Of a stretch of 64,000 nucleotides of DNA, positions 29,190-30,849 are shown piece after piece. Numbering within the stretch: the first letter of the stretch is position 1; the number at the start of each line of letters is the position of its first letter. Source of the stretch: Magallana gigas (Eukaryota); NCBI RefSeq assembly GCF_963853765.1, contig NC_088857.1, forward strand, positions 15,190,001 to 15,254,000, read 5' to 3'. The position numbers were made by a program, and so were the translations under genes. Under the pieces are notes generated by a model. That model made no database searches. It was given only the letters and a program-made list of their open reading frames with translations, and was not told the origin of the DNA.

Positions 29190-30347
29190 TCAGTGACCAA
29201 AACAATGACATATTCCTCCCCAGCAGTGGGCGCGGCCAAATTCACAAGTTTCACACGTGTCTGCTGTCACACAGGCTACAGGTTAAAGGATAAATGTGAA
29301 AGTCAAATCTATAATCTAATCCCATAAAATTCATATTAAAATATATAAAAATTTGTAAGCAAAAATAAATCAAAAAAAAAATCATGCATTATCCCAACAT
29401 GCATTTTATGATTTCTGGTGAGAGCCCCATATCTTCAAAAGGTACCATTACCTACATTGCTATAAAAACGACAAATGAATGGTTAATCATAACTGTTATT
29501 CCAGATATTATTCAAACTTTACGATAGACTAGGTGATAGTTATAGTAGTTATAGTCAGTGTTTTACAATTAGCTTTAAAATCAAATCTGAATTAGCTTTA
29601 AGTGCATATAATTCCAAATCAGCATTAATTATTATCTAAGTACTTTTAAACTACTGTCACTGTTTATTTGGAATTTTAACTTTAATAAGTACCAAGAATG
29701 ACAACTCCAACTCTTTCCCTTGTTACCATCTACATAGGTCTATGTAATTTACTGATACATACTGTGAAATTTGAAACGCAAGAGTGATTATATTATCTTA
29801 TACGTATGATTTTTAAATTGAAATAACCAAGAAATTAATTTTAAAATAGGAGAGAAAAAACCCTATCACATAACTTGTTTTATGTCCATGTGCAGAAAAA
29901 AACCATGTTAATCACATATATATAAAAAGGCGTTATTTTCATCACATTTATATAAAAAGGCGTTATTTTCAACATTTGCAACACTTGCAATAAAGAAATA
30001 AAATGTCAGTTTCATTAATTGCATTTTTTTTTTAATTTCTTCAAGAATAATTCATAAACCACATCACAAGTTTAAGTGGCTTTTATTACTTACGACATAT
30101 GGTTTTTGAAATATTTATCATTATAAAGATATTTTTATTTGAATGAGTAACATTCAACGACTACTGTAATTTTCATTTGTGTATGTATAAATATCTCCAA
30201 GAGATATAGCTGTACTAATTACTTATACACTGTACATACATGCTCCTGAGCTTTTGATACAGCTAAAGCTGCCGTGGTAACAGGCTAGTGTTCCATCGCT
30301 ACAGGCCAGGGTACAGTCGGCTGTGGAATGGCAGGCCTCACAGGAAG
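29190..30347 (-). CDS. Small Cys-rich secreted-type peptide, two exons, resembling I84 (cvSI-type) protease inhibitors; 5' exon uncertain, possibly a pseudogene
   Basis: Exon 30347-30240 (108 nt, phase 1-1, acceptor TTTGTGTTTGTCTAG, donor GTATGT) encodes SCEACHSTADCTLACSDGTLACYHGSFSCIKSSGA. Exon 29275-29190 (acceptor CTGTAG) encodes SCVTADTCETCEFGRAHCWGGICHCFGH-stop, with AATAAA overlapping the TGA. Confidence 0.75.
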
Positions 30348-30849
30348 CTAGACAAACACAAAGGAAGATGTGCACGTAAGTAGTCTAGCGATATGGAAGT
30401 TAAAGTAGAAATGATTTAATTTATCAATATTGGGATTTTGAAACAAATCGTTGTCTATTGAAGACCGAAGGTAATTTAATTTAATTTCTACCCCTGTCTG
30501 TCTCTCTGACTGACATGCATTTTGTCCTCTGTGTTTCGAATCTTTTAAAATCTAGAACAATTCTGCTAAAAAAAGGACTGACCGTATCAAACATTTCTTA
30601 AGATTAAAAATACCAGTGAGCAAGAAGAATTACGAACTAAACAATTTTTTTAAATTCGTCTTCACCTGTGTACTGGTGGAGTTAATTTTAGCATAGAAAG
30701 GATGGAGCGGGATTTCTTCAGCCATAATGAATTCCCCTTCTGTTTGTTTGTTGTCAGTCATTGTTGTTGTTGTTGTTGTTGTCATTGTTGTAAACATTTC
30801 AAACGTCCGACTTTTTCCCCAGTACTGCTTGGCTGGTTTCCATTAATAC

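Follow-up and report, generated by a model that had tools for sequence, protein, structure and literature searches.

[quoted passage not shown] We analysed a stretch of 64,000 nucleotides of Magallana gigas, which is referred to as the window in the following. A sequence-only reading had proposed two in-phase minus-strand exons, each encoding one cysteine module, and this proposal is borne out by the sequence, by the translation and by RNA that is spliced at 30240|29275. Likewise, the described module patterns, the TTT codon at a position where the pattern predicts TGT and the poly(A) signal overlapping the stop codon are all found in the sequence. The features of the gene, with positions counted from the first letter of the window, are the following.

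30349-30348, minus strand: acceptor AG of intron 1, phase 1, with the upstream exon outside the window (loose ends of the RNA contigs)
30347-30240, minus strand: exon 2 of three, coding for module 1 (sequence and RNA contigs)
30342-30340, minus strand: extra Cys codon TGT, three residues before Cys1 (alignments)
30267-30265, minus strand: Phe codon TTT at the conserved Cys5 position, the first Cys of the C-x-C of the family (window sequence)
30239-29276, minus strand: intron 2, 964 nt, phase 1, GTATGT...TGTAG (RNA joint 29275<->30240)
29275-29171, minus strand: exon 3, with the coding part 29275-29190 for module 2 (translation and RNA contig ends)
29192-29190, minus strand: stop codon TGA (sequence)
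29190-29185, minus strand: poly(A) signal AATAAA, sharing the last base of the stop TGA

Exon 2 is preceded by a pyrimidine tract and the AG at 30349-30348, of which the G at 30348 is compatible with the intron AG as well as with the last base of exon 1. Its first two bases complete the Ala codon with which the signal peptide ends; module 1 follows, and the exon ends in phase 1. The donor of intron 2 reads T|GTATGT at 30240/30239 and its acceptor AG|C at 29276/29275, the latter preceded by ...CCTGTAG. Both coding exons are open and in phase with each other, both introns are in phase 1 according to the RNA joint and the loose end, and the 3' UTR comprises about 19 nt. When all six frames of the 64-kb window were scanned with a loose six-Cys module pattern, these two exons were the only stop-free matches, and in the assembly exons 2 and 3 are single-copy, the gene being a singleton at C5:15.22 Mb. 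Intron 2 carries a 2 x 30-nt tandem duplication (29911-29971), and a (CAA)n microsatellite, which was skipped as a repeat in read mapping, is located upstream of exon 2 at 30752-30793.

Transcription was assessed for the region 28800-34799 by mapping three RNA contig sets (X1, X2 and X3), which stem from three runs of three studies, one of these runs bearing another organism label, together with one raw poly(A) run. The sole joint found connects 29275 with 30240 and skips 964 nt bounded by CT..AC on the plus strand, i.e. GT..AG on the gene strand; the junction anticipated at 30240-29275 is present in X1, X2 and X3, with one contig each and a depth of 2605, 651 and 37.7, respectively. The contigs of X2 and X3 cover both exons without gaps and with five and one other letters, respectively (two and one on 30240-30348, likewise gap-free), the X3 contig differing from the window at one letter in 213, and both stop at 29171/29172, which is 14-19 nt past AATAAA. 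In the raw poly(A) run (12.9 M reads), of which about 1% was sampled, no reads fell on the exons, and expression is therefore not general. From these results we conclude that the two exons are a real, transcribed and correctly spliced gene with very high RNA depth in two runs.

All three RNA contigs extend past 30348 by 49-75 nt into sequence that is foreign to the window. The 30 letters next to 30348 are identical in X1, X2 and X3, and their frame reads V-V-L-L-I-C-G-L-A-Y followed by the junction codon for Ala. Judged by its hydrophobic composition and the A-x-A at its end, this upstream sequence is the predicted end of a signal peptide, of which the last 11 residues (VVLLICGLAYA) are visible and whose start codon is located outside the 30 letters read. 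The signal-peptide exon that had been suggested at 30665-30614 was not confirmed, since the mRNA runs from 30348 into ...VVLLICGLAYA, and the bins covering 30400-30799 had zero depth in all four runs; the candidate furthermore begins with GTG and contains an in-frame TAA. The stretch 30665-30614 is thus intronic or upstream non-coding sequence.

Next, we turn to the family to which the peptide belongs. A library-wide HMMER search with exon 2 as the query matched the 78-residue protein XP_022309400.1 (E 4.7e-8, 76% identity), a 'serine protease inhibitor Cvsi-2-like' of Crassostrea virginica, which is 76-85% identical to the window peptide per exon and 81% identical over the mature part. Five other proteins matched in the representative search were low-complexity repeat proteins and were discarded as not being kin. 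We then took seven further Cvsi-1/2-like proteins and derived an HMM from them, with both XP_022309400.1 and the window peptide left out, against which the mature window peptide scored 21.6 bits (E 9.6e-9 for one comparison) and XP_022309400.1 31.4 bits. Shuffling the window peptide 1000 times with the cysteines kept fixed resulted in a mean score of -4.7 bits and a best score of 9.5, none of the shuffles reaching 21.6, which indicates that the likeness goes past the cysteine skeleton.

The fold points in the same direction. XP_022309400.1 was modelled with AlphaFold from a seven-row alignment, the pLDDT being about 75 across the mature peptide; in this model, each module consists of a short helix followed by a hairpin. 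The top fold match of this model among 550,129 Swiss-Prot models was Cvsi-2 (B9A8D7; E 2.3e-3, probability 1.00, TM 0.52, residues 17-78 on 18-85), followed by Cvsi-1 (Q30HU9; E 8.8e-3). The link to cvSI-1 and cvSI-2 accordingly runs via XP_022309400.1 and via proteins that are named 'like' by NCBI. Several other searches returned little: scanning each exon and XP_022309400.1 against Pfam gave nothing beyond Toxin_2 at E 1.2, a word-indexed protein search returned nothing for the 53-residue open frame around exon 2 and XP_022309400.1 alone for XP_022309400.1 itself, an ESM Atlas search by features was uninformative with all scores at or below 0.81, and the PDB held no significant match by sequence or by fold.

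The gene structure provides a further line of evidence. I84 inhibitors have about 70 residues, 12 of them Cys, a mature mass of about 7-9 kDa and a pI of 5-6, their signal peptide comprises 17-19 residues, and their genes have three exons and two phase-1 introns, with exon 2 encoding the end of the signal peptide and Cys1-6 and exon 3 encoding Cys7-12 (PMC9198434). The layout of the window gene is the same, with three exons and two phase-1 introns, exon 1 being known from RNA alone. Using XP_022309400.1 as the query, we identified three further two-exon genes in the oyster's own genome.

C5:56375166-56375613, minus strand: paralogue with two exons
C5:56379188-56379930, plus strand: paralogue with two exons
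C5:54118038-54118470, plus strand: paralogue with two exons

In each of these three paralogues, one exon encodes the canonical array C-x5-C-x4-C-x6/7-C-x4-C-T-C and the following exon another six Cys, and the phase-1 introns are located at the same two positions as those of the window gene. A profile search retrieved as named relatives 'Cvsi-2-like' proteins and LOC111105578 of C. virginica as well as 'Cvsi-1-like' of Saccostrea echinata, from which the HMM described above was built. Proteins of M. gigas itself, whose records may be missing from the set searched, were not among the matches, even for the canonical paralogues. The genome contains at least 13 other I84-like loci, which are mostly arranged in tandem clusters.

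C2:24248271-24271412: cluster of I84-like loci
C5:56375160-56379934: I84-like pair, head to head
C1:67504424-67515419: cluster of I84-like loci
C5:54117999-54118473: I84-like locus
C5:30.83, 38.75, 42.36 and 50.78 Mb, and C2:30.97 Mb: single I84-like loci

Taken together, sequence, fold, gene structure and size agree with the I84 call, which had initially been made from the cysteine spacing only. We are fairly confident that the window holds a transcribed and spliced gene of the mollusc-specific I84 family (cvSI-1/cvSI-2 type), which is likely to be the counterpart of XP_022309400.1. Three of the loops between cysteines (x3, x6 and x2) are one residue shorter than in the razor clam and are common to the window peptide and its C. 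virginica orthologue, so that the two constitute a short-loop subgroup.

The only activity tested in the I84 family is the tight-binding inhibition of subtilisin-type serine proteases, including a Perkinsus protease (PMC9198434). By homology, we hold it to be somewhat more probable than the contrary that the window peptide likewise inhibits subtilisin-type serine proteases. The secreted peptide would bind and block such proteases of parasites or microbes, and the model predicts for each of its modules a short helix that packs against a beta-hairpin, akin to CS-alpha/beta peptides; secretion, fold, disulfide pairing and inhibitory activity are all predicted properties of the peptide. An alternative, which we regard as unlikely, is that the gene is of I84 lineage but has changed its function and now encodes a defensin-like antimicrobial, a signalling or a metal-binding peptide. 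This would be in line with the altered Cys pattern and the five His of the peptide, with an identity of about 30% to the characterised cvSI-1 and cvSI-2 (measured through XP_022309400.1), with weak profile matches, one to Toxin_2 and one to a nodule Cys-rich peptide, and with an rmsd of about 2 Angstrom when single modules are superposed on plant defensins and scorpion K-channel toxins, albeit with non-significant E-values. However, the pI of 5.5 is acidic as in the inhibitors and unlike that of the cationic defensins, inhibition is the sole function tested in the family (PMC9198434), and a CS-alpha/beta fold would itself be compatible with inhibition, as protease-inhibiting peptides of this type exist, e.g. 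ToPI1, which is known with trypsin (6mrq) and was a weak match here. We therefore retain protease inhibition as the preferred function.

The cysteines of the peptide depart from the family pattern in two places. Module 1 reads C-x5-C-x3-C-x6-C-x4-F-x-C and is preceded by an extra Cys (S-C-E-A-C), the codon of which (30342-30340) had been overlooked in the first reading of the sequence, and module 2 reads C-x5-C-x2-C-x6-C-x4-C-H-C, the C-terminus being ...CHCFGH. Eleven of the 12 conserved positions are occupied by Cys, while Cys5 is a Phe in the window DNA; owing to the extra Cys before Cys1, the two exons nevertheless still encode 12 Cys and not 11. The predicted mature peptide comprises 61-63 residues with a mass of about 6.5 kDa, which is slightly below the razor-clam range and equal to that of the C. 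virginica orthologue, and is acidic (pI 5.5; 5.53 for 63 residues) with five His. Between module 1 and module 2 no alignment was obtained by BLASTP, and MAFFT superimposes the modules of the paralogues on each other.

Whether the extra Cys becomes part of the mature peptide would depend on the site of signal peptide cleavage. The (-3, -1) rule on signal peptidase sites favours a cut after A-Y-A, by which the extra Cys would be kept, and the mature peptide would then contain 12 Cys with one disulfide rewired. In the relatives, the extra Cys aligns with a Gly or Ser just ahead of E-x-C, which is likely to be the -1 residue of their signal peptides. If the cut occurred one residue before E-x-C, as in these relatives, the extra Cys would be lost with the signal peptide and 11 Cys would remain, one of them unpaired; assuming a pairing of the CS-alpha/beta type, the unpaired residue would be the second Cys of module 1.

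A cysteine is found at the position of the window's Phe in all of the eight aligned relatives, including the C-S-C of the C. virginica counterpart. In addition, TGT is present at the Phe codon in three Logan DNA contigs of other samples, which follow the window collinearly for as much as 4 kb and are 90-96% identical to it.

L004:651-782, L031:1-125 and L032:1-125: divergent contigs (Logan; SRR6063403, SRR6063244 and SRR6063085)

Since the relatives have Cys and the divergent contigs have TGT, Phe in place of Cys5 is the derived state, and the suggestion of a lost cysteine is thus upheld. The three contigs already carry the extra Cys (A-S-C-E-A-C), whereas XP_022309400.1 has Gly at this position; by parsimony, the extra Cys would have been gained first and Cys5 lost second. 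The divergent contigs further have in common AGG in place of AGC, two other substitutions and the loss of one nucleotide from the A-run at 30253-30256, near the end of exon 2. If the donor is unchanged, this deletion causes exon 3 to be read in the wrong frame, with a stop codon after two codons; use of a donor located 4 nt further downstream (GTACAG) would bring exon 3 back into frame. The coding part of exon 3 is identical to the window in 12 of 12 divergent DNA contigs, whereas the intron differs by 8-10%; by our arithmetic, the probability of zero changes in 86 nt at 8% divergence is about 8e-4, and exon 3 is therefore under constraint in both forms. An open reading frame of 167 aa on the divergent contig L004 (288-791) turned out to be an artefact of ORF calling, in which the reading continues from upstream non-coding DNA into the divergent haplotype's exon 2 without a break, and the stretch 'VKTNL..LFSS*FF' happens to be open in the same contig.

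The divergent form may represent a second haplotype (allele) or a sister taxon or species. One could imagine on this basis a polymorphic rewiring of disulfides, in which the window haplotype has lost Cys5 and uses the new N-terminal Cys, while a second haplotype of 5-10% divergence keeps Cys5 and has a frameshift in exon 2, which would either truncate the peptide to one module or force the use of a new donor. We consider such a scenario rather improbable; if it were true, disease resistance or protease specificity might vary between the two forms. As for the sequence-only suggestion of a decaying copy, it finds no support in the window haplotype, whose reading frame is uninterrupted and whose splice is in use; RNA depth is very high in two runs, and exon 3 is identical in the 12 divergent contigs. 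Given that the assembly lacks exon 1, the reference individual may still carry a copy that is truncated at its 5' end.

The absence of exon 1 was examined at several levels. A mismatch scan and blastn-short revealed no match of the exon 1 30-mer in the window at up to 11 mismatches in 30, and the exon was also not found in the next 40 kb upstream, which contain zero N runs and where the best match had 12 mismatches in 30. In the entire 564-Mb assembly, searches for the 30-mer (up to three mismatches), a 20-mer (up to two mismatches) and an exact 15-mer gave nothing, and a 16-mer with up to one mismatch gave four matches compared to three for a reversed control, which corresponds to chance level. 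As a positive control, a 30-mer from exon 2 was located once in the assembly. A scan for signal-peptide-like first exons yielded candidates at 53096 and 73751, neither of which agrees with the RNA. Possible causes for an assembly without exon 1 may be a structural variant, an assembly fault or a stretch withheld from the sequence available for the search, and gene models derived from this assembly would miss the gene, as its signal exon is missing.

The same gap could mean that the window copy is a 5'-truncated remnant without promoter or signal exon, and that the mRNA comes from an intact, near-identical copy or haplotype that is not in the assembly. Besides the failure to match exon 1 in 564 Mb while the exon 2 control was found, such a remnant would account for the lack of a good match within 104 kb free of N runs, where I84 genes elsewhere span 1.5-7 kb only (PMC9198434), and for the 1-5 letters by which the RNA contigs differ from the window. 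Yet the assembly contains a single copy of exons 2 and 3, no more than one letter in 213 is changed in the X3 contig, and the poly(A) signal, the reading frame and both splice sites, acceptor and donor, are intact; moreover, the gap can be explained equally well by a structural variant or by a fault in the local assembly. We thus judge a remnant to be improbable and continue to regard the window copy as a transcribed gene. That the exons are chance cysteine-rich reading frames and no gene at all can practically be dismissed in view of spliced RNA in three studies, an annotated protein with 81% identity in another oyster and an exon 3 that is identical in 12 contigs with introns diverging by 8-10%.

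In the neighbourhood of the gene, the window contains exons that clearly match Pfam families, all of them on the plus strand.

3470-3892, plus strand: LIX1 exon (Pfam E 3e-73)
5859-8329, plus strand: Sec1 family exon, presumably of a Sly1/SCFD1-type gene (Pfam E 6e-74)
26315-26611, plus strand: tektin exon (Pfam E 1e-23)
60538-60822, plus strand: kringle domain exon (Pfam E 3e-16)

Two long open reading frames on the minus strand, at 30882-31355 and 34780-35094, share the stretch ...IEIEFSIFIRKTWRDLFNSNNIKHTERS... and have no Pfam match. RNA contigs of low depth cover 30940-31362 and show letter substitutions of the kind expected from copies of a dispersed repeat.

Among the humoral defences that oysters direct against Perkinsus proteases, I84 inhibitors are the best documented, and variation in them has been linked to resistance. 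To this family the locus adds a strongly expressed short-loop member, the window allele of which has a naturally altered Cys skeleton, and it thereby offers a ready test of how far the I84 disulfide framework can change. We are dealing with a known family and a new member with a derived change in its Cys framework.

The closest known system is XP_022309400.1 of C. virginica, which has the same spacing as the window peptide in module 1 (x5, x3, x6, x4) and module 2 (x5, x2, x6, x4, x1), the same C-terminus (...CHCFGH) and a similar signal end (CGLAY), its ...FLLLCGLAYV resembling the ...VVLLICGLAYA of the window gene. The two proteins differ in that XP_022309400.1 has C-S-C where the window has F-S-C, and S-G-E-S-C where the window has S-C-E-A-C, and the residue before that Ser is Val in XP_022309400.1 and Ala in the window, which creates the A-x-A cleavage motif in the window protein. 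With cvSI-1 and cvSI-2 (Q30HU9, B9A8D7), the window peptide shares a signal peptide, which in its case is predicted, a length of about 60-70 residues, two six-Cys modules, an acidic pI and three exons with phase-1 introns, but the identity is about 30% (measured through XP_022309400.1), the loop lengths differ and Cys5 is replaced in the window; cvSI-1 and cvSI-2 are known to act against subtilisin and perkinsin, an activity that is predicted for the window subgroup.

The razor-clam inhibitors scSI-1 to scSI-14 likewise have their Cys split over exons 2 and 3 and show the motifs C-x4-C-H-C and C-x5-C, and rule-breaking variants occur among them as well, namely scSI-14 with TGT changed to TGA and scSI-7 without a signal peptide (PMC9198434). 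In contrast to the window gene, which is a singleton, the scSI genes are mostly located in tandem clusters, and the window peptide falls one residue below the published razor-clam ranges in three loops, the second and third of module 1 and the second of module 2 (PMC9198434). Finally, CS-alpha/beta peptides, i.e. invertebrate and plant defensins and short scorpion toxins, resemble the window peptide in the predicted helix and hairpin of each module, and of their spacing C...CxxxC...C...CxC the window module 1 has the CxxxC but F-x-C in place of CxC. They differ from it with regard to the C-x2-C of module 2, the tandem modules and the acidic charge, and neither sequence nor fold scores were significant; for the superposition of one module on a plant defensin or a scorpion K-channel toxin, the rmsd is about 2 Angstrom and the E-values are above 1.
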